Assembly: GCA_051294905.1 (NCBI GenBank)
Contig: CM119374.1
Location: 9,362,001-9,426,000, forward strand
Direction of reading: 5' to 3'
DNA from: Botryllus schlosseri
Taxonomy: Eukaryota
DNA length: 64,000 bases
A model generated the notes under the pieces. The model ran no database searches, had not been told where the DNA came from, and saw only the letters and a program-made list of their open reading frames with translations. Position numbers and translations under genes: made by a program. Positions 28,880 through 54,000 of the stretch are shown here, in pieces. The first letter of the stretch is position 1, and each line of letters starts with the position of its first letter.

Positions 28880-29951
28880 GTATTCACAACATCAGACCGC
28901 ACAAACCAAGCCATATATTGTGTAGGCGATAGGACAAAGGATTCCGCTATTATGCACGTTGGCATGCCTACATAGCCTTTGAGGTGTAACGCACCATCAT
29001 ACATTGGAACAACTATTCCCATTACTCCATAGCCATTTTTCTTATTGCAGTTAGCCTATCGCGCACACGAATACTTACCACGCTCTATAGATTTATGTTC
29101 ACACTGTTCTTTTCGTGTGAAAATCATATTTTAATGATTTTGTTCTAAAATTCTGGTGATGCTCGGTTCATGTTGTGCGCCAGTAATCTACAGTAATATA
29201 GTAGATTTTTATTGTGGTAGATTCCTGTTTTTGTGTGACTCAGCAAAAAGTTCTTGCACCACTAAGGCTGGCAGATTAGTGCATGGATATCCCAGGTCAT
29301 TAAGGGAACCACAGTTCTATACATATACAGGTTTATCCATAGATTTTATTCCTACGAATCTCAAGAGAGCTACAATCATGAATCCGAGAACTCGGCTCCA
29401 AGGCCCAACCCGATTTATATACACATAATCAACGCAGGCACAATACTGATGTAACGGATGTGAAAGCAGTGGAATATACGCAATGTAGGTATAGTCGTGT
29501 TTCCCGCTCCAATAGAATTCCAGTTTCGAAATTATGCTAACGTGGATGCATATAGCCTGCTGCATCAAGAAGTTATCAGAATATTTCAAACGTGCGAAGC
29601 GACATCGATTTACATTCATTATACGATTGATTGTGTTCACGGAACTATGGGTATCTGTATAACGCGAAATATTGGTACTGCATACAGCATTAGTACAGAG
29701 GTATATGCATTCGTCGCCTACATAAAATGACGCATTACCTTCCTCTTTATTGACTAAAGAAACACACCTGAGTTGCCTGACTGTCTCAATGCGTAGTAAT
29801 AGTCACTTAGTTATCATTGCTTGATTTAAACGCAAATCGCTGTATGCATGGACGAATTCTTTCTATCGTTATCAATGAGTGTATTGTAAACTTCGTACTG
29901 TAATCAAAGCGAGTCGGATATCAGCTATTTACACGGGACAGTAACGGAATT

Positions 29952-30017
29952 ATGGCCGGAAAAACGCCGGACGACTTTATGGTTTCGAAACTACTGGGAG
30001 AAGACGCCGATTCAACG
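29952..30017 (+). CDS. PDPK1: PDK1-like exon 1 (MAGKTPDDFMVSKLLGEDADST)
   Basis: Matches the PDK1 segment KxPEDFKFGKILGEGSFST; ATG in ATTATGG context; in-frame stop upstream at 29901; phase-0 donor GTAACT. Confidence 0.82.
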
Positions 30018-33000
30018 GTAACTTGTATACTATTCTCAGTTTAACATAACCATTAACCATAGTTTCTATGGCTCACAATCTTTGTATTGGTCGATTATCG
30101 TTTTCACTGATTTCAATAAGCAGTGTTCCTGTATGGTTTACCAGTCCTTTCAGAAACTGCCATCAAAATTGCGTGCACAGTGGACGTTACTCGACGGAGT
30201 GAAAGTAAACGTAGGTCTTGTGGTAGGCATGCATATGTGACACGTTCCTCTTCATCAGATATGCGAGGCCTAGTTTTCCAGAAAGTTTCATCACGCTACA
30301 TTCTCACACAATGCGGTTAGGAGAGTCTACCGATCCATATTTCCGCATAGAAGATGACAATTATACAGCCTTTATATCCCTTATATAGTACGCTTGGTGA
30401 TAATTCATAAAAATTGAAAGTCATTCGAACGCCAAAGAATAGACTTCAGAATAAATTCGTGTCGACAAACGATCTGATTTTCGGAAGTCGTATTTGGAAT
30501 ATGATTGCGTTGCATAAATTGCCCGATTTCTATACATGACGAATAAATTTCAAAAACATAGAATTAACTTTGTCATTCAGACATGGGGTAATCGTCATGT
30601 GTAATCGCAATTGATAACGTTAGCAAGAAAATTCGAAGTAATCGTAATCATACTCGGTTATATGGCCTATGTAAAAGGTTTCTTGGTAAATGAACGAATA
30701 TTTTCACTTCTACGAGGAATATCACAAAAACTGAACATTTATGAACCAGTATTATTGGGTCATATCAAGTTATTGATAGAAGAAACGTCGGATTTGTAAA
30801 CATCGCTGCTCATTATTACGCAACAAGCATTAGCTGTGCCAATCCCGTAAATATTCAATGTAGTAGTATGAGTGATAGAGCCGCCGTCTTGCTTTACATG
30901 TGGTAATCTACGTAAAAGGAGGATTATATTCACCACTCTGCTTGGATTCAAACAGTATGGCAAATATTTATACCCGTCATATAAATCATGACAATTTCCA
31001 TATCAAATCATTAGAACTCAAGCATTGCTGTTATAAATCACTACCGTGCTGTTATATTCCGTTACTCTTAACGGCGACTCGCAATATCCGGATTGCCGGT
31101 ATGTGTGTTCGTTCAACTATGAGAATCATTATTCGTTACGGCAGATTTCTTCTGTTTACGTCATTTTAATTCACTTACCGCCCAACTTTAAACGGACATA
31201 AATCGTTATTATTGAATTCTATGCTCAAAATTGGGACCTGTCGTAAGACGTCCACTTATACTCCATGCTAGTTTTGGTTGCAGCTATAAGAAATGAAAAC
31301 CACTGGGGGCGAGACGTCGTCAGCTATACATCTGAACTATGGATATATTATTGCAACGAACAACACATTCATATTCACAATTTATTCAATATAAGCTTTT
31401 CAACTGACCCTCGTCGGTAGTGGCCGTCAGTATAATACGGAGATTGCAATTCGAAATGTAAAGAAATGTAAAGGGTCAGTTGAAAAGCTTATAGTGAATA
31501 AATTGCGAATATGAATGTGTTGTTCGTTGCAATATTCAAATTCTGTACCACAAGGAACCTATTTGGATATATTATTATGAAGTAACAAACAAATGACGTC
31601 ACATTTTCAAAAAATAAAATATTCTCTCATCCTCTCATCGCATTTGTTATATTATGTTGTCTCAAAATATGTGTTCAAGCAAGAAAAAAAATTACATTGA
31701 TGCAGTAACCGCCCCATGTCTGCTGCCACTGCCGGTCATCCTAATCAATCAACGAAGTTATCACGAGTCTATGGTAAATGTGACATATTACGGCGTTGCA
31801 CGTAATCCAACCCAATGACTCTTTGCAATTGAATGGGTGTGAGTTTACAATGCTCTGATCCGCATTGTCGAGGAGTAAAATGCGAAGAGATCACGCGCTC
31901 TTAGCTTTCCTAATTCACAAATACGTGGACTTATTGCAACATCATATTGCGACAAGTAGTCGACACCATTCATACCGTGACTTATGATGCATGCAATATA
32001 CACATGCCACTGTGATTTCGTATCTTATGGTGATAATTGAGCGATAACCCAATTGACCACGTGATATATCAAACAAGGCAGATATTTTTATCTCATAGCT
32101 TTTTGAAATTAAAGTTGTTCTCGATTACCCCATCGTCAAGGTTACTTTTTGCTAATATTTCCTATCATCGTTAGTTGTGGGATGATCCAGGTTATAAAAT
32201 CAAAGAGGTGACTTAAATAGGGGACACTGCAAGAGGTTTGTAACATGTGAAAATCCAAGATCTATTTATTAAAATTTTGGTGCTCCTTCGAAGATGCCGA
32301 AAAACTGTTCATGGCGTTATTCACACCGTCATAATACCGCCATTTCTGATTTTGTGAATAAGCTATACTAACCATAGTATGTCGTTGAAGTGTTTATAAG
32401 ACAGTAGCCCGTTATGAATTACAACAGTATGAAATTCGTTTATTTGTATATATTCCATTATCCTGACTACATATGCTCATTAATTGAAGCTCCAAACTAC
32501 ACTTCAACGAGCAATCGTGTGCTATAACAATGGTACATAAACTCTTCCCTAAAATTTGAGAACTGTCGAAATGAATTACCAACTCTATACAGGGGTTTCC
32601 CAACCTGTGGGCAATGAACCTATTTCAGCGGGGGTCATGAAAAAATTAGGAAATTATCATCTCTGAGTAAACTTTACTGTCACAAAAGATATTGCATGCC
32701 TTTACTTCTGAAGACAAAGAAGCGTAGTATCTTGGATGTTCAATATGAATGCGATTGGCCCGTTCCATCACTAAATCGGCAATTAAGACATTTTCAGAGC
32801 AACAACAAGCTCAACTTCACAATATACTGAAGATATATTAGTAATTAATTCCCAATCATATTTATTGTGTGTTGTATTTATATCATGTTGTTATGCCATC
32901 TAGCGGTTACTGCTTAAACACCAGTATTTTTAAATATAATAACGCTTCCTAAGGATCCATTGATTTTTACGAATTTTCAAATGAGGCCACGGTGTAAAAA

Positions 33001-36000
33001 AGGTTGGGGACCGCTCTATACAGATTAAGTGGTTCATGAATCACCTACAATTCTTCGTATAAATGGTTTCAAAATATCAATCGCTTGAAGCTAGCAATAC
33101 TTTGAGCGGTCCACATCTCGTAAAACGTAACTTGTAAGTGAAAGTGTGTCCCGTTCTTTTGCTAGTGTTAAATAAGAAAACTACATCGCGTGCTTATGAA
33201 ATGTTGGCATTTTTCAACACAGTGAACAGGAATGTACAAATACAATAAGAACAGAAATCTCGTAAAATAACAAGAGGCATTACGTAATCAAACGTGCCGA
33301 TAGGAAGATCAAGAATTCGTTATAAGCATGAATTATCGTGAGACACGTTTCTACGAAAATCCAAATTCCACAAAAAATGGGATTATAGGCTCCATGACCA
33401 AGTTATCAAGAGAGGTATTCACTTTTAATTCCGGAGATGCACCGAAGACGATAAAACGATGAATAACATATTTTTTGAGTAAACAGATATAGTGTGATTG
33501 ATAGATTCCAGTTCTAAACTCTTAAGTATTTATATAGGCGATTGTGACGGATGCATACATTCGGATGATGCTACGGACATCGTGATTGGAAGACTATTGG
33601 ATTAGTAGGCGTGAAGCCAGTACTTTCCATTCCGAACTATTACAAGTAGAATAGCGAATACCAAATATACCAAAACTACATCAAGCAGAAGTAGAATCTG
33701 AGATGTCTCAAAAGTACTGAAGTATGAGCAGTTTGAAAAACCAGATTTGAATGAGCCGTCGCGTGCTTTTAATCGTAGTCGACCGTTTTTGGTCCCTTTA
33801 TTCGTAAAAGTGATGCAAACCTGCTGAAAAACTACTTTCTACTCTCCAAAACCTAACGTGTACTAAATAAAGTGTCGTTTCAAAAGCTGTTACGTCAGTG
33901 ATTCTAATCGATTTTAGCGCTCGTAACCCGATAAAATGTCTCGTACCTCCTGTCCATTTTCGACATAGCTTCTGATGGTTGCTATATTAAGATGAATAGC
34001 GCGAAAACAATTTTGTTGTTGAATAAAATTCTGCCAGAAAATATTTCAATTTTGTTGGATTTCAAAATATTTTTGGGCTATAGATACCGTATGTAGCTGC
34101 TGAACCCTTAACCCTTACTTTGTTTCAGGTTGTGTTAGCCAGAGAAATAGAAACCGAAATCGAATTTGCAAGTAAGATTTGGTACTTTCATTGACATTTT
34201 TATGATTCCCGGATAAATTAAAGTTCAGCATAAATTTCCGAGTGAGTAGTCATAAGTTTAAATCCTTATAGTTTAATCAAATGAACTTTCATACTATGAT
34301 ATCCTTCTTCCGATCACAGTCAAAATAATCGAGAAGAGGTCTCTGGAGAAAAGCAGTAGGAAAACGCAATTCGAAAAGGAAAAGGACATCATTGCATTGA
34401 TCGACCACCCGTTCTTTGTCAAACTTCATTACACCTTCGAAGATACAAAGAGATTATGTATCCTTTTTGGCAATGATTGACGCCCAACAATTCGCGACAT
34501 TATAGATTACACACCTGTATAATCACGCCAGAATTTCTTCTCTAATTTCGAAGATAAATAATGTCATCACCTAATCTGACCACAAAACCACACAGTTACA
34601 ACGTAAACACAGGATTCATTTCGGTGTACATAACGGAAGTTATTATTCTCGCGAGAGAGAATACAGAATCACTTACACGCCATGACACAATCCATTACGC
34701 ATGCGTGACGAAACCATTGTGTGAACATGTGAACCGGCATGAATGAAAGATGACAATGATCATATTCGGACAAAGTACCATGATTCCGGCATATTTGGCC
34801 GTGGTAGGCTCCACAGTTGCAACACCGATGTCTTGCGAGTTCGAGTCCGACAGAGGTCGACTATATAATTCCTATCTAATAGTATCACAGGTATATCAAG
34901 GTCCCTTACAGCCGCCCGATCCACGTCAGCCTAGAACGAATGGGAGCCGTTCTTGAAATCGGCAACAACAGCCACAGCCGACAAGCAACAGCTTAAGCTC
35001 AATAGAAATTTGGTCGATTCTATCAATAACGTGTGTACTTACATATTGATTTTTCACTATATTCAATCTGCTAATCGTAGTAACTCCATTGATTTCGAAT
35101 ATAGGCGTGGCTAGAATAGAAATCCTGTTATCCGTGATACTTTAAATTTATTACACGTAGATCTTGTAATGGTTCCTAATCTTTATTATCCTGGGTAACA
35201 CCGACGCCAATCTGCAAGCCTTCTCAGAACCACAAATTCCCGCTTAGACATTAAAACTAAAATCTTCCACAATACATGTCAAACTTCACATATAATACAT
35301 CGCTATAGATTACTGGTACATAAAATGAACCGTGCATCTACACCAGGGGTGGGCAGTTTGAGAACCACTGTCATATAGTGACCGAAGAAATATGGAGATA
35401 ACATATAAGTGGATCGTCCTGCTGCACTATATAAAATTGGGATTATAAACCAAAACGCAATATTGGCATTTGATGATATAGTAAGGATGTGCAAGTTATA
35501 TATATATTTTTATTTAAAACCAACCAACCATTGATTTGAGAATATGGTACACGAATCAGAAACTCTGGCGATATTTGATAAGGTGCTGGTCAACCTCAAT
35601 ATAACCTATTTTTTTAAAACTAGAGATGAAAAGTCGTTAATCTCGATTCTTAGAACAGGATGGAGATTTGAGTCTGTGTGCAGTGATCTGCTTGTAGATT
35701 TGCTGATTCTACTTTTGGTTCAACTCCAGGACACACAATGCTGACAGCGTCATAACCATGTTAGCTTCAAATATGATGTATAGAGATTTTATAGATATAA
35801 ATACTTCTGCACATATAGAGAACGAATCTATCTACGACATGCGCGAATCGGTTTTTACAAGTAGGCTACAGCACGAAAAGTAATACACTTGCTGGAGTAA
35901 TCAATGTAAAATTACACTCGTGATCTCATAGTCATTCCCATTTTGACTTTTTTTAATGTCTAGCAATTGAAACCTTTTAAAATGCGTGGACCTTTAGGTC

Positions 36001-39000
36001 GGGCTATCGCACCAGCAATGAAATATGAATGTACTAGTAAGGATATAACTTATAATTATCATGGTGAAATATAATGAGAAACAGTCTCTCCGAGTCCCTC
36101 CAGAAATTAGATCTTTACTGCGCATTTTTTCAATATTTTAAATATCATTCATGAGCCTTTCGCGGGCCGCATGCGGCCCGCGGGCCGTAGTTTGCCCACC
36201 TCTGATCTACACAATGGCAAATATCATACTATTAAAATATAATTTTAACGTAATATTGTCTCCCAGGTTACGTAGTAGTGCGACCAGATATATCTGCAAT
36301 ATATTTTTTGAGTAATGTGGTCTGTATACGATCGTTTAGCCTTCGCTTTTCACATATGTGAATAAAATAGTATTATTTCTATTTTCCTTGAAATCGCGCC
36401 TTACTGCGCACTTTTTGCCCTCGCCCGAACGTTGGGATTCAATGTTCGTGCCACAGACTTGTGACTGACTAATAGTGACCATAGCGAGAATGAACAGGAT
36501 TGTAATCGGGCATATATGTTTGAAATGCCTTGGCAGTAGCAAACTAAATCACGCTTTTATGGTATTAATTCTGTATGATTTAATAGCAACCTGATCGCTA
36601 CTCAGCAAACCCCTACACCTACACTACGTTACCGGTAATTGAAAACGTAGTCCAAACGGAGATACAACTACAGTGGGGTGTGCTAACCGACAATACATAC
36701 TGCACGAAAGGTTTGGTACGCAAGGTTACTGTTACTAAGAACCAGTGTTGGGATGACTCGAGTCAACTTTTTCGTATGACTTGACTTGACTCGAGTCACT
36801 TTGCAAAAATAACTTGAATTGACTTGACTCGGCGCTCCAGAAATGTGGATTGTCTCGTGACTCGGAGCAAAATTTTCGAGTCAATTTCAAGTCATTAAGT
36901 AAACGGTGTCGATTAAATCACACTATCTTATGTATATTCGGGTTGTTTGCATACGCCGATGTCAACCAGCCATTCACTGATTTCACTGATCCTCCATTGT
37001 TACATCACAAATAAATAGACGATGAAATGACATATTTCTCCCTTTTCGAGTTATAGTAATGTGCGAAAGTGTAGATTATGGCCGCTTACATCTACCAGAC
37101 GCATAATTCGTCAACAACAGGAAGTTTATCTGACCGAAGCATCATTCGGCATTTACACATGTAAATTGATGCTACCTCGCTACATTTGGACAAATTTCAA
37201 ATTCTTCCTATTTTCTGTCGGCCTAATGTAGCCTACATTTCAAGGAGGTGCAGCATTGCTTTTACTGTCACCAGTTCACTGCTCATTAATTTTAGTGCGT
37301 GATGTTTAATTCTTGGGTTCGTAACGTCCCCCAATAGCAAGTCTTTACAAAACAACTTCTTACCCAAATATATTGGAGGGAGCCATTTTAAATGGTGCGA
37401 ATATAGATTTCAGGTTATGGGGAATGAAGAAAAAAAGGTTGCACCAATCTTCTAATTTGACAATACAATTATTTTATGTAATTTTGTAAGTGATGTTGCT
37501 GCTAGCAGTGTGTTACCACACTAGATTTAGGCTACATGACATGAGATTCTGTTGTGATCCCCAAATATTCCCGTGTGTATATATTATACGTTCCAACGAA
37601 TCTTAGTTTTATAGACGGCTGAGTGCTTACATTGCGCAGTGCTCACTTTAACCAACCCTCTTTCATGATTTAAATCGAACGAATATAGTTTATGCGTTTA
37701 TATTCTCACTAATGTGTAGATGGGTAGCGTATTGTACCACATAAAATTGTTCAACTTCTCGAGGCTGCGTATCCGATCCTCTATATTGACTGATAATAAA
37801 AGATGTATAGTATGTACCTATACAGTTACTCGCTATTTTATTAACGTGTACGTGTGCGGGAGCGATACAATACCTTTTTTGCTTGAATATTTACCTTTAT
37901 ATTCGTTATTTCATTCAAGATAAATGGTTAATTAATATGCCTTTCACCCAATCAGTAAAAGGTGAGGACCTTCTATCATCACTCATACTTCGAAAATTGA
38001 ATATGACTTGAATCGTGACTGGACTTGACTTGACTCGTCTTGACTCGAGTCACCTCCAAAAATCGAGTGACGTGACTTGACTCGAGTCAAAATGTGCAAT
38101 GACTCGAGATGACTCGTGACTCGAAGGTAGTGACTTGATCCCAACACTGCTAAGAACCATAATCCCCAGACCCAAGCTCCAGCATACACATGGGCCTACA
38201 AATAGCTGTCTGCAGCAGATCGAAGTGACATTTACGTATTGCATCCAACTATATGGAACAGCGTAGCCATGCAGGAAATTGTTTGTTTTGTTCTATTCAC
38301 AACATTGGCGCTTATCGCCTATAAGGTAATTTGCGCCCAGCACAGTAATTTCATTAAGATCAAAGTCTTCTGCGGTCTTTATTGTCATATTACCGACGGC
38401 TTCCATTCTCACGCTCGCCCACCATCGGTCACTCTCATTTTTCGTGCATCCGTAATCTTCAGTCTTTGCTGTCGACTTTTTGGCTCGGCTCACTTCGGCC
38501 TTTTCATACACTGCAATCGCAACGAGGATTGCGATGAGGAGCCCAGATTCGAACCCCTTCCATTTGTGTTGTGACACTCTTAACCAACTGCGCCACTGGC
38601 TTCCCTGTGCCGGAAATTAATTTTGTTTTCTGATCCCGATCCATTCCGTCATGGCTTGATGGTTATATTATGTTCAAAGGTGAATTCCTTAGTTCTTCAA
38701 TTATAGACTTTTGCCTGAGTTTCGCCAGTGGAGGTGACTTACTGTCATACATTGAAAGTAACGGAGGCTTGAGTCGAAACTGTGCGAAACACTATGCCGC
38801 GGAGCTGGTTCTTGCGTTGGAATACCTACGGAAACTTAACGTTGTTCACAGGTGATACTAGTTCCCATGAAAGACTGCGAGGAAGCAGTCAATGCTTTTT
38901 ATGTGTATAGGCTTCCTGAGATACAAGACTTGATCATCGAAAGAAGCAATATGTCCAATCACTCATACTGCCAAAGTCGTTCCACTGGATGCTTTTCGAC

Positions 39001-42000
39001 TGACTCTCATCTGATGAACCCAACTTGAAATATAGAAAAACATTGTCTTGGTAACGTATTAGTTACGAGTTTTGAGACTCGTGAGCTACCCAATTTGCCA
39101 TTTAAATATGCTCCGCGACGCAACTCTGAAATTAGTAAGCTATTGACTACAAAAGGTCAACACCTTCGCCCAACCCTACTGCCGCCCTTTTGGGTGAGCT
39201 GAATGCTATACCAACAATCAGCTCCTCCGCTAACACCGGATAAATGCAAACGAACCACCGGGGTCACAACACTCTGGTTGAAAACCAATGCTACAACAGA
39301 AAAGAGACCGATTCAGATATAAAATAACCGAATATCTACACGGCACTAATGAAATATTAACAAAATAGCCAGAGATGTCCTTTATGTCGCCAGATTATCG
39401 GATGCTGCACCTATATAATGATGGACTCAAGAACCTTTAAATGAAAAAGGGAGCGATCATGAGCAAGGACAGAAAACTAATTGTTATTCCCACTATAGTA
39501 TTGGCACATTCGGAGTTTTTTGGGGGTGTTGTCCAATGGGAAAGTTGCAAGCCGCTATATTATCAAAGTCGCGCATGACAACTATAGACTGCGATGATTG
39601 ATCAACCACATTTACTGACCTTTGACCTTAATGAGAATCAGTTGAAAAGCTTGGAGTGGAATAAATTTGACAACATTAATGTATTGTTTGTTTCGATTTT
39701 CATATGTACGTTCGTAATGTTTAGTTTTGACTATTGAGCATGTCAGATGTTATGATACACAGTTCGCTAGGCTATATGACGCGTTGGGAATATGGAGAGG
39801 ATCGGTATCTGCAACTATTGCGACGAGAATGAGACGTCTGCAGATGCTGGTTGGCCATGTTCAGTTCATGCATTCGATCATGTGGCTAACACATTCATAT
39901 ACCAACTCCTACAGAGTTATATATCAGGACAAACTATTATTCACACCTGTTGACGAAAATCCAAATCTCACAATGATCTCCACTTTTCAAGGAACTTTCA
40001 TTCATTTTATATTACAGTGATTTCCGGTCACGAAGCATCTTACCTACAAATTATTCGTGTACAATTGGCATGTTGTTTTCAGAGATCTGAAGCCAGAAAA
40101 TGTCCTTCTGACTTCTGACATGCACATCAACATTAGCGACTTTGGGGGTGCTGTGAAGTTCAAACGGGAATCGAAGAAGGACTATAAAAGTATGTCTAAA
40201 TTATATTGTAGGCGTATTTGTTTCAAACTTTCTTGTGAACAGCAAACATATTCATGTTCACATGTATCGCAGTGACTAGCAATATCGAAGTCCATAATGT
40301 TGAGCAATGATTATAGTCATATGTAATGGATTCATAATCCTATTTGGATTTTATTTGTGGCGAGTTCGTATGGTCGCGTCACTCATTCTCATATTTACTT
40401 GAAATTGTGACCGTACGTGTCTTAAGCAGTATCGTACTATTCAGTGAAATGTGGTCAGGGGAAGCAAGTGAGCCAGTGTCTCACCGGTAACCGGGTTGAG
40501 TAAAAGAAAATTATGACTCCTTCAACGATGGCAACACCAATAATTAAAAGTATTAACCATCAATATTCATGAATGGCCGTCCTAACCTCATCTGTGATAG
40601 CGCAATTCATCGTGAACGGCTCAGAATTTGTAATAGATCATATATATCGCGAATGCTATTGTCACACTGATTGTGGAAATCTAAATACTAATAATGTCAG
40701 CAAACCAGAACGCCTGAAAGTCTCCAAGGAATGCGAAATTTGGCATTGTTACGAACAACGGCGGCACAGACGACCAATGACCAAATGAGACACAGATGGG
40801 TTTGCCTCACCTATACTCAAGGGTTCCCATCGACATGGATCCAAAAATAAGGACACTCGAAAAATTAGATTAGCATTGAAATAGCGTTTTGTAAATACTT
40901 TGTATTTTTACGATCCGTAGCATATCATATTTCATACTTTTTGCCAGAAACAATCTGCTTCAGCAACTCTTGTTTATAAAAAGTGCTTCATTGATCTCAC
41001 GACAGCTCAGGTCTAGGTTTACCTTTAATTGTAACTGGGTTTTGACTGTCATTTCACTAAGTCTGTTCCATTCATTGAAACCCTTCGCCGAAACAAGAGA
41101 GAACATGACTTAACTACCCAAATAATTTCAAATAACTTGCACATAAATGCAACTTTTTACTGCAACTTTGTGAAAAGCAACTTTTTACTGCAACTTTAGT
41201 GAAAAATAAATGCAACTTTCCACGGATTTGACTGTAACAAGAACTGGCCCTGGTAATCAGTATTTTGTCTGGGTTATGATGAGTGCAGTATCGTATTGAG
41301 TAGCTCGCCTCGCGCAACTGTTTTCTGATTATATCGACGAGGTCGCGTGGATTCGCCTAATTACTAATTATTGGGGCGTTTGAGCATTTTGTACGATGTG
41401 ACCGCCACCTCGTAAATATAGTGATGAGGTGGCGCACGTAACCTCGCAAGTTGGTGCCTATGCTACCGTTTACTGCTAAAATGATGTCCTCTGCGATGGT
41501 AGGCTACAGCTCAAACTGTTATACCACGCACTGCCCTAGCCATCTCACCACTTAGAAGTCATATCCTGTGGTGTGTACGCCACGGGAATTCCGTTCATTT
41601 ATAATGTGAAAAGGTCTTGACGCAAAATGGAGAATTTTAGAATATTATGCAACACAGATACCAGAGGAAAACGATCGAAGTTCTGCAGTTGTTAAAAATA
41701 AGACAAAAGAAAGACGCAAGTTGAAAACAAGGACATTTCTGAGAAATAAGAGCAGCTGGGTTTTCTAAGACCTGGCCCTTTAAAATAAAGACGAATCTTA
41801 GAAATAAGGACGGTATGGCAACCCTGCCTATACTATTAGCTGACTATCCGACAATCCCAGCGCAGTTACAAAATGCGCAATGTACTTCGCAAATCGCCAG
41901 CGTAGTATGAATGATGTATTTATAGTTGCGATGCCCAACATGTTGTGCAGAGCAAATATATTCCCTCACTGATCTAGAAGTTATGTATTTTCTACTTTTA

Positions 42001-45000
42001 CCTATGCCTTCAATTGTTGATATGTACAGGACATTTTTTCGCATATCCTGCGTGTGAAGAGTGATAATGTAATCAGAAAGAAATCTCTAACTAAATCTGC
42101 TACCATATCGGGTATATATGTTTTTTTTATATATATATTTGTAAATCAGACTATAACGAGTCAGTGCCTCACATGAATATCACCGGACATCACTAGTATT
42201 ACTATGTAGGCCTAATACCTTATACGCAAAGTCGTCGTATCGGCAGACAGATACGCAAATTTCGATGTGAAGTTTGGTAGTTTTCACCATGACAATTCCG
42301 TTAGGACTGATCATCAAACTGGACTTGATAGTTCTGATACTTAGGCCTATGTTTTATTGTGACTGAGCGAGTAGGCTATGTAAATATGAAAAAATTATTC
42401 CTTCAAATACTTTAATTCAGAGGCTCTACCGGGAAGCGGCTCATCAAATTATGCAGCGCCAGAAGTAGTCAACACGAAAACATGCAATTTCAAGTAAGCA
42501 TTCATTTTATTCGACTAACCTTCTGCACTATAGGCACAGTGATGTGGCAGTCACTTGGCGATTCTGGCTCTGAGCCAGGGGCGGCAGGCTGCAAGGGGAT
42601 GGGAAAATAGGGCTGCACAGTGCACACAGCACAGAGAGAGTGCTGATCACGAGCTACAGCGTTACATGTTTAACAGTAGTTAGCTAAATTACACTAACTT
42701 GATTCGACACCATATTTATGCTTGTGTCTGAAATATTATTATACCATTGGTGTCTCAATTACGAGTTGTCAGAGGAGTTACTCCAAGCCGAAAATGATAA
42801 ACTCGTATATTTACGTTCTACCATGAATGACGATCGGCTATCAACTCTACCGATTCTTTCTGTAGATTAAGAGACTACGTTCCAAAACATGATTTTGAAG
42901 ATAATATCCCTGGTTTTGCTTCGGTGAAACCTCGAAAGGTTCAATTTTGAGGCAGCTATTGATCTTCATTTGCACATTTGCTAGAGATTTTTTGTCTTTT
43001 ATTTTTGGTCTTAGTGCTAAGGCAGTGAGGCTTCTTTCTTAAGCGATATGCAACTGCTGAGACGCATAACATTATTTGTAATTGTTTTTATGAAAACATA
43101 GCTTGAACGTGAAACTATTTTAAAATTTGCTATATTCTACTTGGTGCGGCATTTCCAGCGAAAGCCAGGGGCGGCAGAATAAGCTCCTACACCACTATAT
43201 AGGCGGACTGCAATCAATGATTATTATAAACCGCTTCAAATCAGTTTGGATGTAACTTCTTTCAATTCGGATCTCTCTTATATCAGGTCATATGATTCGG
43301 GCGGATCATCAGGAATGGTCACACCGATCTCATTTTGTAATTTGTCATTGTACAAAGCTGTGTCCAGATGTGGTCAGTAGCGAAGTACTTACACTTATCC
43401 TTATACACTTATACTTGTACTTTTTACTGAACTGGTTATGTTTTTAAACCACTCCCACTTGTACCGGCCAGCTTCTAGGCAAAACTGCATACTTTGTACA
43501 CTATGAGATTTTCGAAGTATATGATAGTGTTGTTATATGTTGGCCTGCCTTTATGAGTAATAGCGACATCATGATCGGTTTGAAGAGACCCTATATCACG
43601 CACAATTAACATATTTTCATAAATACTTTCTATTTGTGGTGTCATTGGTCATTATACTTTGGTCGCGAAGATGCACCCGGGAATTTGGAAAGTGGCCAAC
43701 TCCGATGAGCTGCTCAAGTCATGCGACCAATCGGCCAATCTACTTTCGACGTGTATTTCAAATTGTTACTTTTACCTTTAATTGCTGCCTCTACTTGAGT
43801 AGCAACTCCGGCTACTTCGACCACGCGTCTTCTGAAATCCAAGCCAGGGGCGGGCAACTTCTCCTGTCGGCGGGCCGGATATACGAAAATTAGGAACTTG
43901 GCGGGCCGGATTGCTGAAGATTATTCGCCCATTTATCCATATATACAAGGAATAAATCGTATTTAATCAATGAATTTCAACGACAGCAATGTAACTTCAA
44001 AGCCATTTCTCGCCAATAATGACGAAGACAATGTGGACTTGAGAACAGCATTGTCATACAGGCACCACCATGTCTGTTTCTCTCTGATCAATCAACACAC
44101 GGTGAAATCTTTAATTAAGACTTCAAGGCGTTCGATAAGCCCGGAACCCCAAATGTACCAAGATATTAATTCATTAGGGTTTAGTAGGTGACGAGATAGC
44201 GAGGTTGTTCAACTGTGCGGCCTATTTTATCTCGATATTCAATTCATGCGGTCGAGGCCTCTACGAAATTTGAAAGTGGCCCAGACCCGTGTTGTGTTGG
44301 CGACCCCTGGCATAAGCGATGTCTTACAGAAGCCTAGAAGTGTGCCGTGCTGCAAGTCGACGGTTACGGAATCAAAAATAAGAAATATCGGTCTGGTGTA
44401 AATGACCATTGTAGTCGACAAAAACCATGATTACCACAAATGCCATTTGGGTTGAGTACATCGTAAATGCCGATAAGGCGATAAGTCTTCTCGATTCGAC
44501 GAACTTACGCGTATAAGCTCCACCCTCGCTCGCTGCGCAGTGTGCATGCATGTGTATAATGAGTAATGACATACAGGCACTAAAATTTGACGTATGTAGC
44601 CTAAGCAAGTAGTGGGGAATCTCGGAAGACTGGGGCCGCGGGCCCCTTTATCTTGTAAGACGGAAAAATGTCCGCCGGCCGTATGTTACCCACCCCCTAT
44701 CTAAGCGATATGAACATGCACCACACACACCTATTTTATATTAATCATATATAACTGGTGCATGATCACTGATCACACTGTGGGTCTAATAAGTATATGC
44801 CGGGTTCGGTTGTATATGCTGCTGATTAGGCTTACATTCACGGTAAAATAATCACAATCTTGTTATTTCAGCTCAGATTTATGGTCTCTAGGATGCATAT
44901 TATACCATATGTTATCCGGCAATCCCATAATCGAAGAATCCGTGAATAACGAAAACTATCACAAAATCATTAAAACGAAGCTGAAAAGACCAGACGTAGC

Positions 45001-48000
45001 GGACGAGGAAGCAATGGACTTGATCTCATCTCTTCTGGTCAGTGCTTTTCAACCTTTTCGAGCTCTATTCACACTTTTGTTGCGAAATAAATTTTATTCG
45101 TCCAAACTAACCGAAATTGTTATACAAAAAGAAGATGGAGATACTTAACAACGTTTTTTCAGATATGCAACAAATTAGCTACTATGTAGCTTAAGCTATC
45201 AACTGTCATCAAAAAGGCAACTTTTTTCGCTCGTTTCTAATTCAAATATTTCACTAAAACCCTTTCTGGGTTTTGTACAAGAACGACTACTAGTGCTTGG
45301 ATGGCCAGGTCATGAAATGTGTTATGCACTCCTATCAAAAACACAGCGTATTTTTCGTGAGTGAAAGATGCTTGCTGGCAGAAATCGTTTTTTAAAGCTT
45401 ACAGAAATGTCCCGGAGGCTCCAGTTCGTCGAAAGGGTGAAAAAACCACCTACTTGTGTTGAGGCTTTTGCCTTATGTCTTGGAAAATAAGGTCCAAAAC
45501 GACCAAGGAGAGTAAGCACATTAGAGCTCGTTACATTGTGATATACGTCGTCCAACTTGTGTTCTGTTTTTTTTCTTTCGATTTCCCATTTTCTGTCTCA
45601 CGAGAATAAGAGAAGAGCAAATAAACTCACGATACTGTGTGTTCTGCTCTTTAGCTGAATCCAACTTGCTAATTCATAACAGTTTAATTACGGTAAAGCA
45701 GCTTTTTAGAGTATCACCAAAATTTGAGTTTTTGTGGCAACTTGCGACCCGAGCCTCACCCATGAAAAGGAATTCATTTTTAATATTACAGTAGTATGCT
45801 ACGATTTTACGGGCATGTATGACATACAGAACGCGCACACCACAATTCTACCAAACACAGCTCTACAAAACATGTCTGACGCACGTGATTTCAGATTAGG
45901 GTGAATTGAATTCCTCTGCCTGTCACAGTTTTACTACTGTCTACTCAGATTGCATGAACTGGACTATTCCGTGCCTACAACGGAGCATATCCATTTAGAA
46001 AGGTTTGGCCATCCAGCAAAGGTAATTTTTTTGACCAACGTTATGTCGCTGCTTATGTTTTGACACCGCACTTTGTAAGCGGTTTGTTGGCCAAACCCAG
46101 GGATATATAGAACTACGGGATGGCTGACTTCATTTTGGCCTTTACCTAAGTAGGTCCAGAAAGTTACCTGCAATCTGCCTCGAAATATCCACTTTTCTGC
46201 AAGCTAGCGATACAGCTGTTTCTAGAATAACGATCCTCAACCTTTTGCGGAATAGTTAGTGAGTAAGCTAGACATTCTTCCCTTATCACAACCTTACTGC
46301 TGTATAGCCAACCTAGTAAAGTATGACACTGCCGTATAGCCAACCAAGTAAACTATGACAACTCTGAATTTCAGTAAATCATGAATGTGTTTAATTTCTA
46401 CACGTCATATAATTTGCATCAGGCCATAAATAACAGGGTGAATAACGAATAATATGAGCGTCTTCTACCTATTTACAAGCCATTGTCGGAAACCTTGCAG
46501 CTGGGAAGGGGGGGGGGGTAATAGGATTGATTAAATCAACCTTTTCAATTCGCGTTAATCGACAATTACCATGGAGTATAGGGTTGCATTCAAAACAAAC
46601 ATGTTCAAAACCAGGCCCTTGTATAAAAAATACTTTTTTAAGCCATGACGTCAAGAATATTCAATAGTGACGTCATATTGGATTGACATTGACAATTGAA
46701 AATATAGTGTAAATATAGCTCCTTTGACGAAATATCTGTGCTATTGCTATTGAACCGACTATTTTGAGGGTTCCAGCCATCCCATATCGATATTAGTCGG
46801 CTATATCGGGTGGTAATCGTCCGTAGGCTCATACAACACGTATTTTGGAAAGTATTTATACAATTATGGCATAATTTTACAACGCAAAAAGAATTTTTTT
46901 CAAGAGGCCTTTGTTTAAAACACTGTTTAAAGCATGTTTTAAACATAGTGTTTCAAACACCGTTTGTTTTAAATGCACCCCTACCATGGAGCATTTCCAA
47001 TAACGAAAAGATAGCACGGCCTGTAAGGACTCGAAATTGCGATGGCAGCATTGTCAGCTTCTATGTCACTCAATGAAAGTTGATCAAGAAATCAACACAC
47101 CATTGATAATTATCTTCAGGTTCAAATGTAGCCAGGGTAGCAGTTTGGTACATATCATTTTCAATTTAAGAAGCATTCGGTAGACCCAGTTGTTGAATTC
47201 AGCTGATATTTTGTTCACCGAGAAATAGTTTCATGACCGCAGTGAAGAAATTACCACCATGGCTTAACGGTACATCACGAATGGGCCTCCTGAAGCATTT
47301 CATGCCATTTATCAGTTAAGAAATATTCAGTATCATTGTCTTGCAGATTTTCCGATAGAGCGATAGATGATTCCATGTCAAAAAATCATCTCGGTGAGGA
47401 GGCACGAGATCCAAATATTCAGATCGTGGCCATCTTTGCCAAGATTTCAATGGCATGTGCGCAGTATAATATACCAGGATATCCACTGTTGACGTGATGC
47501 AAATGCTGGAACATCGCGTTTGTTTTTCCGGAATCTGCAACAAAAATGAACAAATGATGTATTTAGAGACACAAATTAATATTAAGAATATATATAGATG
47601 TATGCAGAGTTGGTCAGTAATGAAGAACTTCTACTTCATTGCAGTACTCAAGTAGGTGTTGCCTATTTTCGAAGATACATCTTGTAATTTTGAAGCAGCC
47701 ATCTCTAAACTTAAGTACCTTGCAGGCATTTCACTTTCTACAGCTACTTGAGGAAGTTCAAATACCAGTACGCCCGGGAATACAACTGTTACTTGAGTAG
47801 CAATGCAGACTACTTTAATCACATCAGGATTAATGTAAATCGCTCATTTAATAGCGTATCACTAGAATCAGCCAAACTTACCTTGGGCCGACTGAGGAGA
47901 GGTCCATGTGTTATTGCGACGATTTGACTAATCCTTGCAAATTAAAAGCAATCTTCAGAGTTTTCTCTTCCTCCATCGTACAGGTCCATAGCCTATAGGC

Positions 48001-51000
48001 TATAACTGTTTATATGGTAAAGACAGGCCGTATCTCAGGGTCGTATCGTGTCCTGACGATTGTGTTGGCTTATCCATTCAAGGGAGTGAGCATCTTCATG
48101 GCTTCAGTAAGAGCAAATGGTCAACAAATGCTGTGGCCATATACTGGGAGTCAGCCATTGGCAGTTCACAACAGTGCACTTCTGTTGAAGTATAATTCCA
48201 GTACTGTAGCATTGAGGTGCCGTTCATTAACAAACATATGCCTGCCTTGTTTTACCAGACATGTAACTGATGAATAGTATCTGTAACAAGAGGATTGGAT
48301 TCAACAGTTGTTATGGACACTTACAACTGCAACGACCTTGACGTGTTGTGTTTGTATTAGATTCAAATGTTTGGTTATCCTTAATTGAAATGCCTCTTGA
48401 ATCTTGCACACCGGTGGTGTACTCAGTGGCTCCAATTCTTACTAGGAATAATCCAGCAATGATCTGGAATACCGGTAAGCCTGCAATACCAGCACTACCA
48501 GCATTCGTACATTAATCTATAGTACAAGATCTTAACTGACGAAGTCCCTCCTAACGGTCGCCTTCATAGTTGACACGGCACAGTGTAATTGTACACTTGT
48601 ACAGCCTTGGATGGTGACATACATTCGAATAACATACCGGTTAATGAAAAACATACCGCAAGGCGTAATCAAAATCATACGGCGGATACTAATGTTAACG
48701 TTGGAAATTATTCTACATTTTGTTATCTTCTCACGATTATCAGCGCAGCGAAACATGTTACATAAGATACTACAGGAGCAGAGATATTCCGAAGGCGAGT
48801 AAATGACCGTACCGGTATACCGGTAAATTGCTGCTGAAGGAATAGGGCTAATACCGCAAAGTTTCAGACTACCTGAACATCTTATAACCTAGTTAACCTC
48901 TAGCTTTATATAATAACATAAACATGGATATTATATGCCTCTACCGCTCTCAAAAACTTAAAATTACACACAGCTGACACACGGCTGACCGGAACGTGCA
49001 TCAAAACTGAATGCGCGAATCTGGACCCACTTAGGTAATACCGCGATGACGCAATTGACGCAGTCAGCCATCCCGGAGTTCTATATATCCCTGGCCAAAC
49101 CTTTACGTCTTCATGTGCCCCGACGCAGAAGGGGTTAGCCTCGAAATGAATGAGTCTCATAGTCCTGATCTCGCTCGTTGCACACCCGTAAGCCTACACT
49201 AGTTCATCCCAACGGTATTAGGCCATGTCTTCCAGTAAAAACCAGTCGGACAAATCTTATCATGAATTCTCATGATAAAGCCACATTTTTCGGCATGTCT
49301 CGCTTATTGGCAACAGTACCCAACACAGTGACCTTGGATATGTAAAAACTATTGCAGGATTTTTTGCAATATATTCAACAAATATTACAATATTACATGC
49401 ATCATTACAGATAGCTCTGTCACCGTGCTGACCCAAAACCATACCATGCGGCATTTGTCGGCATGTCTTTTTTTGACCTAATCAAACTGAATTTTGACCA
49501 AATTTTGACCTAGCGCATGCAAATTAGGTGGTTTCCCATATAATGTTCAAATTGTAACACTTATCTACATTTCTGGTTGGAACTGGCAGTCCTAACGAAA
49601 AAATTTGGCCTGAAAAAAGTTTTGGGCTTAGAAACAGGCAACTTTTAACATGAAAAAAAAAACAATATTTTAACGAAATCTGGCCCTATGTAGACTTCCA
49701 GTGGTTACAATACGTATAATGGTGGAAATAATAAAAAAGAAATTGGTACAATGAGAGATGCTTTCCTAAATTCTTGAGTAGAAAGTGAATGTCCTTACTA
49801 TGAAACATGCCAAGGACGTTCAACAGCAGCAGTTTTTGGCTGACAACACTCAAGTTGTGCGTACACTTCTGATGACAAACCATGCTGCTTCATTCTGACC
49901 ATGTTGTCTACATCACAATTTTTCATCATGAGCTTCTCAATATAAGAATGATGCAATGTCCAAAAAGTCTTTCTTCAGTTAGGATATTGCGGTACGTTGA
50001 CCATAATACCATGTCTACATATTTGTTTTATTTGGCCGTTTATGATTCACAATGAGTAGTGAATTAGCTGTTTACAACGGTAAGCCTATAAAGTAGGCTA
50101 CAAGCTGTATAATATCAATAGATACGTCCACCGATCGTGCAAAATTCACGATACAAACGAAATGCAGAAGTCAAAAAAAATTTGACTTTATGAACAAATT
50201 TGACAAATTTTGACCTAACGCTACAAGTTTGACAAAATTTTGACATGTAAAAAAAATCGTCCTAATGATCACTATTACATCTCCATCGACGGGATTTTGT
50301 TTTTAGAAATTCGCAGCCAAAGAGCGACTGGGAAATGAGCAAGCGGGAGGATTCGACGCATTAAAAAATCACAAGTTTTTCACCGGAATGAATTGGGAGT
50401 TTCTACCCACAATCAAGCCTCCGTCCACGGTCAGAACATTCTCATCGATAAGCTCAAAGACCGGAAGCGAACAATCTCTATCGTGCAGAGTATATAAATA
50501 TGACCACAATGATTGGAGTTCATTACATGCCCGTATTACTTTTTTTACCAGCATATGTCATCGGCAGAGGCGAGACTATCACCCAACAAAGACGGTACCA
50601 TGAAAAGGGAATCTAAAACTTTAACACCTAGCGCCGTAAGGTAAGTGGGGAATTACGACATTGGTGGGTTATACCCAGAGGTTAGTAACGAATACCTAAA
50701 ATATTTTCATTGATCGATCAGATACATCTTGCAATTTGGAATCATCGATGAACTGCTAAAATTATGTGATCCCCTGACTAAATCTACTTTTTCAAACTAA
50801 TTACTTGTGTACTTCTGACACGTTTCACACTCGAGAGGTTATGGGAAATCTTTAACTCGTAAAGGTGGTTCCCAACGTGGGCGATAACTGTAAATGTTAG
50901 AACGTACGGTGACATATATTTAATTATCACGGCCAAACATGACCGCGAAGACAGCTTATTTTGCATATGACGCGACAAAAAGGTCAACTCAGCGGAAGCC

Positions 51001-54000
51001 GACGCGTAAACCGGTTCTCGAGCTCCAACTATATAAAATAACCTTTTGTTAGTCAATTGACCAACGATCACAGTTACGTGAATAAATTCCCCGTTTATAG
51101 GTTTTCTTTTTCGGATCCGTAAATATGGGGAGGGCGAAAATTTGAGTCGAGCTCTTAAAAGTACAGTCACGCACTTTCAGTTTCCACCCGGCGTTACTTC
51201 CACTTCTACTTTAGTAGCAATACTGGTTACTTTGCTCACCTCTGGTTATAGATAAACACACTCCATTCATATATCAAAGAAAGCTGTTCCCCATCATATC
51301 GCTATGCATCGGCTGTCACGGAGTACGTGCGCTATACGTCTTGTTTAAATTTCCTGCAGAAATTTAATGCCATCAGATCCGGATGACATCGAAGGATTCG
51401 GGGTGCCCGTCCATATTTCAAGCAGTGAAAGAGAACAATGGCTGAAGCGACAACTGAACTCGACATGGTGAGCAATTGGACGCTTACAAATTGCAGTAAA
51501 CGTGATAATCAGAGCATAAACATATTATATTACTGCAACTGTAACTATATACGTAACTGTTCTGAATCATTTTTCGCCACCATCGAGTCGATCCCAGTCA
51601 TTAGCATTTCTACTATTTTCTCCTCTTTTGTGTTACTTATTGGTCACTTTTAGAGAGACGGTTAACGAACCTTTCTTCCGCAGAAAGTTATATTACTTCC
51701 ATATCTACCTCTATGCAAACGTATCTTACTAATAGCGGCAGAGATAGTCTAGGACTGGTAGCCACCATAGGTAGTTGGTACTCGAGTATAAAATATGTGT
51801 AACGACGTAAATTTCTACTAAATTTCAGTGGTGTCATGTAAAAACTAAAAAAAGTAATATCAAAACGTACATTCTGGCGAAAGGTCTCAAACTATTAGCA
51901 GTAGATAAGATGCAGCTAGTCTGAAATTACGGGATGCATCTTCGCGACCAACTTGAAATGAAAAAAATACTACAAATATGTGCAATTACGGAATTATAGT
52001 CGGGTACTAATATATAGAGTTACCAGATGTTCTCTTTCTAGAGGATTTGTCCTCTTCTCTCAATCCAAGCAAAGTGTTGTCCGATAGAACGCTGAAATTT
52101 CCTATTTTTCGTATGTCTTCCTCATTTTTTCTTTAAACGAAAAATTTAAGTGAACAGACAGCAAAAAGAGGTGAAACCCGCACAATCTACTCGTGGAAAT
52201 CGGGTTTGTCCGGCCTTTCCACGATGTGTTGAATAAAATTTTAAAAACGTTCAACTGTGCTACGATTCGAATAATGTGTTTAAATTTCGTGTTTTAAGGT
52301 ATGTCACCGAAACTTTTTTCCTGTATCCATCAAACTTGATGCAAAGAAAAAACTTTCCTTATTGGTTCCGAAACTATGGTGGGCCTACATACAGGGGCGC
52401 GCTCAGTTGTTATGACAATTACCATCGTGAAATTTTCTCACATATATATTTATCCTACTTTCTACGTTACAAGCTGTAAAGTGTGTAAAGTAATTACTCT
52501 TGTCAAAATAAATGTCAATTAAAGGCAGAGGTTGTCAGTAGCGAAGTAGTTCTACTTTTTCGAAGTACTCAAGTAGTTTTCCTCTACTTCTGGTACTTAC
52601 TCAAGTAGATCTGATTTTCGCTACTTCTACTTCTATTTCGTTATAATATGTGATCTACTTACTTACTTTTCGCTATTTTCAGTTTGTCAAGTAGAAGTAG
52701 CTCAATCTTCCAATCAGGAAGATAGCCTGAGGAATTTCGGGGGTGTTTTTCAGAGCATTAACATTTAATTTTCATAAAAGTTGAGTATAGCCCAGGATTT
52801 TCGTCGTGCTTCGCGCGCAGTGGATACGGAGTTACCAGTATGATTTCACGAAAGTATCGATTAATATAATTTAGGTAGCGGGTTGGCGTGATTCCGTTCA
52901 CACCACATTGTCGCTCGTCACCCATATGAATTAATTCATCACAGTATATATGGCACATCATATCGTTTGAAATTGATGTTTCACAATCTATCATTTACTT
53001 GTCATATCGTAATCTACCATGTCCGTGGCACGTCCTAACCTGAAAAAGTGGACTCTGACTTTTTTGTTAGTTTTAGTGCTGTTTAGCAATTCTGCCTTTG
53101 AAACTTTCTAGACTGAAGGCATGAAAAATGTGTTCCGCTTTTAGAAGTAGTATTTATGTTTTATTTTCAAGTCCCAGTATCATATACTTTGAGTTATAAT
53201 TAATATCAGTTCTTTTGTCTGGATAGAATACATGTTGAAGTATAAAAGCAGGTGTGGTAATGCCTTTAATTTCCGGAAATAAAGCTACACAACATGGCAT
53301 TATTACGGTCCCCCATATTTTTATTAACGTTTACTAATCGCGCAAAGTGTTTACACCGTATCCTATTCAACTTCTTCGTATTGCTCTTCGACTAAACTAC
53401 GGACCTTATAATATGGGGGATGGCGCCATACCATGCTATTTTCTAAAACGTGTTGTTCGAGAAAACAGAGGATAAGTATCGCATCTCCATAATAATACTA
53501 TAATTTTCATCCTATGATGTGGACGAATGCTTATGCTGTCGAAAATTGGATACCTGCTGGTATGCATCAATATGAATCAAGCTCGTCACCTTTCGCATAG
53601 CTCAATTTGCACCTTTTTCAAAATCCATCTGAACGAATTAGGATCGTTTTCACAACTACTTACTTACTTGAGTACTTTTGAAGTCAGTAAATTCTACTTC
53701 TACTTCAAGTAGTTTTAGGTTGCTTATGGAAGAAGTACTTCTACTCGTACTTGAGTAGATTTTTTCGTCGCTACTTCTACTTCTACTTGAGTAGCTTTCT
53801 TGACTACTTTGACCACCTCTGATTAAAGGTGCATAGAGGTAGTCAAACAACATAATCACCTGAGTATTTACTTCGAGTAGGAAAAACATAATTCAGTATT
53901 CTCAAAAAGTAGTAGTGACCACTTCCGAATAAATATCAGAACTTCCTAGCGCAATAATGTATTTTATTCACATATCTTGCGTGCCATATCACCGTAAGAT

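Follow-up and report, generated by a model that had tools for sequence, protein, structure and literature searches.

A PDK1 paralogue with an acidic glycine-rich loop in Botryllus schlosseri and other ascidians

A gene on the forward strand of a 64,000-nt stretch of the Botryllus schlosseri genome (assembly GCA_051294905.1, contig CM119374.1, positions 9,362,001 to 9,426,000; the window) is shown by phylogenetic comparison to be PDK1-B, an ascidian-specific paralogue of the kinase PDK1 that arose from one duplication before stolidobranchs separated from Ciona and Clavelina. Judged across the orthologues compared, its acidic glycine-rich loop (G-loop) is a hallmark of an ascidian-wide PDK1-B clade and not an oddity of the window gene. 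The reading we favor, at slightly better than even confidence, is that this loop would strongly impair phosphotransfer, that PDK1-B would act as a PIP3-recruited and mainly non-catalytic protein, and that the window copy would be pseudokinase-like. Akt, S6K, SGK, PKC and related kinases share PDK1 as their single upstream activator, and to our knowledge only the canonical form of PDK1 has been found in the animals studied so far. Sea squirts are the closest invertebrate relatives of vertebrates, and Ciona is a tractable model. By placing an acidic phosphate clamp beside preserved catalytic residues, adenine pocket and lipid-binding domain, ascidian PDK1-B offers a natural experiment on the glycine-rich loop and possibly a new regulatory layer of PI3K signaling.

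The loop is encoded at window positions 29997-30014 (+ strand), where the codons GGA GAA GAC GCC GAT TCA read G-E-D-A-D-S. These residues occupy the positions of PDK1 G89-S94, with Gly91>Asp, Ser92>Ala and Phe93>Asp (human numbering), and the exon 1 peptide MAGKTPDDFMVSKLLGEDADST aligns residue for residue with PDK1 ...DFKFGKILGEGSFST. The first-pass annotation had read GEDADS in place of the PDK1 loop, with the VAIK Lys (here FAIK), alphaC Glu, HRDLKPEN, DFG and APE all intact, and both statements were borne out: exon 1 holds the loop codons, FAIK with its Lys is divided between exons 2 and 3 and HRDLKPEN between exons 4 and 5, the alphaC Glu falls in exon 3, and DFG and APE are encoded by exons 5 and 6, respectively. 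Chance is not at issue for GEDADS, because six orthologous proteins carry matching exon sequence.

The assembled frame runs from 29952 to 55423 in 13 exons (1428 nt, 475 residues), with GT-AG introns throughout, and encodes a kinase domain followed by a PH_3 domain. Splicing evidence came from contigs of two older runs, X1 and X2, which are probably RNA. Boundaries of exons 8-10 were set by homology to orthologues (Styela and the transcript P0226) and by frame, not by RNA, and the same homology revealed an additional 89-nt exon in this region. The features are as follows:

29778..29951, + strand: minimum 5' UTR (X2 contig over 29778-30019; in-frame stop at 29901-29903 before the ATG)
29952..30017, + strand: exon 1, start codon, beta1 and G-loop (MAGKTPDDFMVSKLLGEDADST); GT donor, N-terminus collinear with the Ciona, Styela and Clavelina orthologues
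29997..30014, + strand: G-loop codons G-E-D-A-D-S, from the sequence and alignment to PDK1
34129..34171, + strand: exon 2, beta2-beta3 (VVLAREIETEIEFA and the first base of the Ile in FAIK); AG/GT, joint 34171>34320 in X1 and X2 contigs
34320..34457, + strand: exon 3, beta3 Lys, alphaB/alphaC (PIF-pocket region), alphaC Glu and DHPFFVKL; PDK1 structure matches, spliced contigs and 2 raw RNA reads
38707..38851, + strand: exon 4, beta5, hinge, alphaD-alphaE and the HR of HRD
40083..40189, + strand: exon 5, DLKPEN catalytic loop, DFGGAV and the start of the activation loop
42421..42493, + strand: exon 6, degenerate T-loop and P+1 loop (ALPGSGSSNYAAPE)
44872..45037, + strand: exon 7, alphaF-alphaG (SDLWSLGC...); a 55-aa Logan fragment is 98% identical
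50307..50489, + strand: exon 8, alphaH-alphaI, end of the kinase domain and start of the linker; AG/GT with frame kept, boundary by homology (Styela, P0226)
50552..50640, + strand: exon 9, linker (..AEARLSPNKDGTMKRE..); homology, consensus donor AAG/GTAAGT (splice at the slash)
51360..51467, + strand: exon 10, linker (..SDPDDIEGFG..EREQWLKRQLNSTW); homology and frame
54030..54185, + strand: exon 11, first half of PH_3 with the PIP3-binding basic residues (DKKRGISVKTRQ); PF14593, E 3.6e-16
54245..54299, + strand: exon 12, middle of the PH domain
55325..55423, + strand: exon 13, end of the PH domain and stop codon; PF14593, E 1.3e-6

Several lines of evidence identify the encoded protein as a PDK1. 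Pfam assigns Pkinase to its kinase exons and PH_3, the PDK1-type PH domain, to exons 11 and 13; for exon 3, the top-ranking solved structures are all of PDK1 (E about 2e-9), followed by RSK at 3e-5. In a maximum-likelihood tree, the protein falls inside PDK1, within an ascidian clade (100/100). It has the same architecture as canonical PDK1 from human and ascidians (AGC kinase domain, linker, PH_3), aligns with it collinearly and shares Lys111, Glu130, HRDLKPEN, DFG, the adenine pocket and the PIP3-binding basic residues. PDK1-B differs from the canonical form in its GED-x-[D/E]-S loop and in its PIF pocket (I119, V124, Q150), and in the window copy Lys228, the T-loop Ser241 and the DFG+1 Thr are missing as well. 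Over the kinase domain, the window copy is about 44% identical to human PDK1, compared with 60-64% for the canonical ascidian paralogue, PDK1-A.

A search of all 495 Mb of the assembly, using three exons and PF14593 as queries, turned up a single further PDK1 locus, which lies on C16, and only two PH_3 loci in total. The C16 gene encodes ...DFRFGKVLGEGSYSTVILAEEKTSKREFAIK..., matches structures of human PDK1 at E 1.5e-89 and is canonical (GEGSYS, DFGTAK, SSFVGTAQYVSPE). The first-pass annotation had taken the window gene for a PDK1 paralogue and had suggested looking for a second, canonical locus; this locus, together with the placement in the PDK1 tree, confirms that assignment. The C16 loop codons are GGC GAG GGC TCG TAT TCA, so each Asp in the window loop is one base change away (GGC>GAC, TAT>GAT). 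Candidates for further PDK1-like loci were rejected: the next-best matches in the genome are an intronless Aurora kinase on C11 and an intronless RSK on C2.

The two PDK1 genes are built differently. In PDK1-A (G000:C16:12486600-12500300), the kinase domain lies in two exons and the PH match in a single open frame; the kinase domain of PDK1-B is divided among eight exons. The sole kinase-domain intron of PDK1-A (after ..ERKTKQ, in alphaB/alphaC) is absent from PDK1-B, which implies that intron positions diverged strongly after the duplication. The C11 locus at ~28.02 Mb (L017 787-1773) holds a complete Aurora-type kinase of 328 aa, and the C2 locus at ~19.27 Mb (L020 781-3021) holds a complete RSK of 746 aa with two kinase domains. 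Each is one uninterrupted ORF, while the vertebrate counterparts have many exons.

An exon 7 query against 1.84 billion representatives returned no orthologue, only the 55-aa Logan fragment (98%) and unrelated kinases; the orthologues were reached via the canonical paralogue and then via Ciona PDK1-B. Their G-loops, and that of the window gene, read as follows:

Ciona intestinalis orthologue: GEDEES
Ciona savignyi orthologue: GEDEDS
Clavelina lepadiformis orthologue, isoform X1: GEDEDS
Styela clava orthologue: GEDNDS
Logan-derived transcripts P0226 and P0228: GEDNDS
Window gene: GEDADS

The signature of PDK1-B is thus G-E-D-x-[D/E]-S, versus G-E-G-S-[F/Y]-S in canonical PDK1. Conservation of GEDADS in related species had been proposed as a check, and all B orthologues listed here have an acidic residue both at the second Gly and at the loop tip. 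In a 236-sequence alignment of the PDK1 family, Gly occupies the second position in every one of the ~186 non-B sequences that include the loop, and the tip is Phe or Tyr in nearly all of them.

All ascidian PDK1s form one clade in the tree (A+B, 100/100), which splits into a canonical A subclade (93/88) and an acidic B subclade (100/100). Each subclade mirrors the species tree, with Ciona and Clavelina on one side and stolidobranchs on the other, and a single change suffices to account for the acidic state. A recent, lineage-specific duplication with convergence was rejected, as forcing the window gene to group with the stolidobranch A copies gave an AU p of 3e-30. The split between stolidobranchs and phlebobranchs plus aplousobranchs has been dated to 389 +/- 32 Myr (PMC5899321); because the duplication predates it, the acidic loop has been kept for ~390 Myr. 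Since every sea-squirt order sampled retains it, the loop is a feature under selection in an undescribed subfamily of PDK1 rather than a local defect. Public databases label the orthologues simply "PDK1" or "PDK1-like", and our search of the literature outside subscription journals found no report of a PDK1 paralogue in ascidians or of its loop. One Clavelina lepadiformis entry, PDK1-like isoform X2 (P0232), has an odd N-terminus, MIFLFYECWAKMKIQRWFWRKTLEPTR, that looks like a +1-frame reading of the exon encoding ..DDFLVLRVLGEDEDSTVVLAKDIRTN.. in isoform X1; judged from the protein letters, P0232 is probably a splice or annotation variant without the G-loop.

We compared the remaining functional residues across clade B. 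The window copy and all of its B orthologues retain the beta3 Lys, alphaC Glu, HRD Asp, catalytic Asn and DFG Asp, and more broadly K111, E130, H203-R204-D205, K207, N210 and D223-F-G are kept in all B copies. So are the adenine-pocket residues L88, V96, A109, V143, L159, A162 and L212, and the two pocket changes in the window copy (Y161F, T222S) are conservative. The PH basic residues at 465, 467, 472 and 474 are likewise kept (K, R, K, R in the window copy; K465, K467, R472, R474 in PDK1). The window gene therefore lacks the classical mark of a pseudokinase, loss of the equivalent of Lys72, Asp166 or Asp184: K111, D205 and D223 are all there, and motif-based surveys that score just Lys, HRD Asp and DFG Asp would miss PDK1-B. 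Its loop is neither the canonical PDK1 GEGS[F/Y]S nor a match to the (G/S/A)xGxx(G/S/A) consensus for kinase competence (Scheeff et al. 2009, PMC2639636), the second Gly being Asp.

Changes elsewhere fall into two groups, one shared by the clade and one specific to the window lineage. The PIF pocket (34320-34457 in the window) is remodeled across B (I119>E/S/R, V124>K/L/N, Q150>E/D); in the window copy, the PIF/phosphate pocket typical of the PDK1 family carries I118L, I119E, V124K, V127F, R131K and Q150E, with K115, T148 and L155 kept. The P+1 loop of the clade reads A[E/D]YVPPE, and Ciona, Styela, P0226 and P0228 retain both DFGTA[K/R] and SFVGTA[E/D]YVPPE. Specific to the window copy are T226G (the DFG+1 Thr), K228V, S241P, F242G and T245S, so that in the Ser241/Arg204/Lys228 set only R204 is kept; loss of the T-loop Ser and Lys228 (40138-42464) is confined to the window lineage. 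The T-loop Ser is kept in the other B orthologues except Clavelina (S241A), and its loss in Clavelina B is, from the residues and the tree, independent of that in the window lineage. Relative to stolidobranch B orthologues, the window copy is 82% identical in the PH domain and 79% in beta1-beta3, versus 27% in the activation segment and 42-45% in alphaF-alphaI (sister species, 73% in each). Its end branch is 0.68-0.75, compared with 0.05-0.18 in sister B sequences, and it evolves about three times faster than its sisters.

These comparisons underlie our favored reading of PDK1-B as a largely non-catalytic protein. The first-pass annotation had proposed a low-activity or pseudokinase-like PDK1 paralogue serving as scaffold or decoy, or else a kinase that handles nucleotide differently, and these proposals would fit the comparisons. 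In PKA, the loop backbone at the second Gly (Gly52) binds the gamma-phosphate, and this is the most sensitive position of the loop (PMC4718504); in human kinases, the loop consensus is violated by 84% of pseudokinase domains versus about 4% of active ones (PMC2639636). With Asp at the second Gly and an acidic residue at the tip, the backbone clamp on the ATP gamma-phosphate would be lost and negative charge would lie over the phosphate site, so that phosphotransfer would be strongly impaired, although nucleotide could still occupy the pocket. Recruitment to PIP3 membranes through the PH domain would be retained, and at the membrane PDK1-B might act as a competitor, scaffold or allosteric partner in PI3K-PDK1-AGC signaling, mainly without catalysis. 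A conserved PIP3-binding PH domain together with an altered PIF pocket makes a membrane-recruited, largely non-catalytic modulator of PDK1 signaling the simplest reading. The window copy appears to be furthest along this path, having lost the T-loop Ser, Lys228, the DFG+1 Thr and much of its activation segment and alphaF-alphaG; with the N-lobe and PH domain conserved, these losses lead us to read it as a pseudokinase-like PDK1.

Known kinases with altered loops provide precedents on several sides. VRK3 also has Asp for the second loop Gly (TRDNQG, D175 = PKA Gly52), and this Asp occupies the phosphate site and helps form an acidic, ATP-repelling pocket (PMC2639636; PMC4718504). VRK3, however, has lost HRD and DFG and has bulky residues in its adenine pocket, whereas PDK1-B keeps these sites intact; we therefore rejected a VRK3-like occluded, nucleotide-free pocket for PDK1-B, in which nucleotide binding may persist. 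RYK resembles PDK1-B in keeping the three main catalytic residues while lacking the G-loop consensus, and it is inactive by experiment (PMC2639636), but it belongs to a receptor tyrosine-kinase family and deviates at the beta3 motif, where PDK1-B keeps [FY]AIK. Together with the loop-violation statistics, the PKA, VRK3 and RYK precedents suggest that PDK1-B should position ATP poorly for transfer. In ILK and BSK8, as in PDK1-B, side chains stand at the Gly positions, and there the non-Gly residues at the Gly50/Gly52 positions join in nucleotide binding, through phosphate contact in ILK and Mg coordination by Asn71 in BSK8 (PMC4718504). The residues in those two proteins are Asn rather than Asp or Glu, and both have degraded HRD and DFG motifs. 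CDK1 and CDK2 are inhibited through phosphorylation of the G-loop at Thr14 and Tyr15 in GEGTYG. The charge so introduced falls at loop sites that carry acidic residues in PDK1-B, with F/Y93 at the tip equivalent to Tyr15 and residue 92 (Glu in Ciona) to Thr14, but it is reversible in CDKs, which keep the second Gly, whereas in PDK1-B it is hard-wired and the second Gly is Asp.

The conserved catalytic residues appear compatible both with a nucleotide-binding pseudokinase and with an atypical active kinase, and the possibility that PDK1-B is still a working kinase, with the acidic loop as an adaptation, is one that we consider unlikely but take seriously. The E-D-x-D cluster might hold an extra divalent cation, the preference for nucleotide or metal or the turnover might have changed, or the loop might be a built-in brake relieved by a partner. 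Lys111, Glu130, HRD, Asn210, DFG and the adenine pocket have been strictly kept in B over ~390 Myr, which argues against simple decay, and the conserved DFGTA[K/R] and SFVGTA[E/D]YVPPE segments of Ciona, Styela, P0226 and P0228 speak for activity as well. Such long retention of the catalytic residues and T-loop is unusual for classical pseudokinases. With the T-loop Ser and P+1 loop present in four of six species, some activity may have been under selection, a counterpoint to the non-catalytic reading. Precedents are available in the Asn side chains of ILK that touch the ATP phosphates from both Gly positions, in the Asn at the Gly52 position of BSK8 that coordinates Mg with AMP-PNP, and in the roughly 4% of active human kinase domains that break the consensus. 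Set against this, the side chains directed at the phosphates in PDK1-B are acidic and not polar and give the loop a net charge of -3 to -4, and the PIF pocket, which docks PDK1 substrates, is remodeled clade-wide. Loss of the T-loop Ser in the window copy and in Clavelina, taken with the 27% conservation of the window P+1/activation segment, is hard to reconcile with normal substrate phosphorylation.

The acidic loop might instead be a gain. On this more speculative proposal, which we hold to be doubtful, E-D-x-[D/E] would clamp the phosphates via an extra divalent cation or would be a hard-wired mimic of inhibitory phosphorylation of the G-loop, and PDK1-B would be a PIP3-recruited, nucleotide-binding pseudoenzyme that pairs with PDK1-A and tunes PI3K output. 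PDK1 dimerizes and trans-autophosphorylates. Were the proposal true, a kinase/pseudokinase pair unique to tunicates would stand at the top of the AGC cascade.

The window gene is transcribed and spliced. Contigs from both X1 and X2 contain the exon 2>3 joint 34171>34320 (GT..AG), and a 1011-nt X2 contig places just 163 nt in a 5.3-kb stretch, as for a spliced mRNA. Another X2 contig covers 29778-30019, comprising 5' UTR and exon 1, with the GEDADS codons unchanged and three differences in total (29957, 29960, 29978), all synonymous third-position changes. It ends in "GT" plus 4 letters unlike the intron; exon 2 starts with GTTGTG, so this end is as expected for exon 1 spliced onto exon 2. Two bulk RNA runs yielded two raw reads over exon 3 and no read over exon 1. 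An X1 contig in which exons 2 and 3 are spliced together starts 16 nt inside intron 1 (34113-34128), and X1 has no depth on exon 1; this contig could derive from unspliced pre-mRNA or from a transcript beginning within intron 1, which would lack the G-loop and an early in-frame ATG. Given the few raw reads and this contig start, both the expression level and the exon 1-2 joint are supported indirectly. The + strand from 15 to 36 kb contained no other G-loop-like exon. On the verification of exon 1 usage called for in the first-pass annotation, exon 1 is transcribed and no canonical alternative was found in that interval. In a further sample, the Logan contig P0001 (SRR25569784) contains a 55-aa ORF that matches exon 7 at 98%, with one Asn>Ser, and continues into letters unlike the window intron, so that another sample or a close relative has a conserved exon beside a diverged intron.

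These data also bear on whether the window copy is a duplicate in plain decay, under relaxed constraint and on its way to becoming a pseudogene, with an odd loop that serves no function here. Its long end branch, the heavily diverged activation segment and alphaF-alphaI and the very few raw RNA reads fit such a course, but we find it improbable: the 475-codon frame is intact over 13 exons with canonical splice sites throughout, the PH domain and beta1-beta3 remain 82% and 79% identical to orthologues, and every catalytic and adenine-pocket residue is kept. Moreover, spliced transcripts are present, the exon 1 variants are all synonymous, and exon 7 is 98% identical in another sample in which the adjoining intron differs. 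That the gene model is an artifact, and that the real mRNA has a different first exon bearing a canonical GEGS[FY]S, is very improbable even with the exon 1-2 joint not displayed directly and the X1 contig starting inside intron 1, since no alternative exon was found in the interval searched, the X2 contig joins 5' UTR to exon 1 and ends as if spliced to exon 2, and six orthologous proteins of other species start with ..PDDFMV.KLLGED..STVVLA.

Intron 1 also contains, at 31350-31540, a short inverted-repeat element (aagcttttcaactgaccc ... gggtcagttgaaaagctt), over which X1 and X2 contig depth reaches several hundred and loose ends are numerous. The element resembles a MITE-like dispersed repeat with transcription from some site in the genome.
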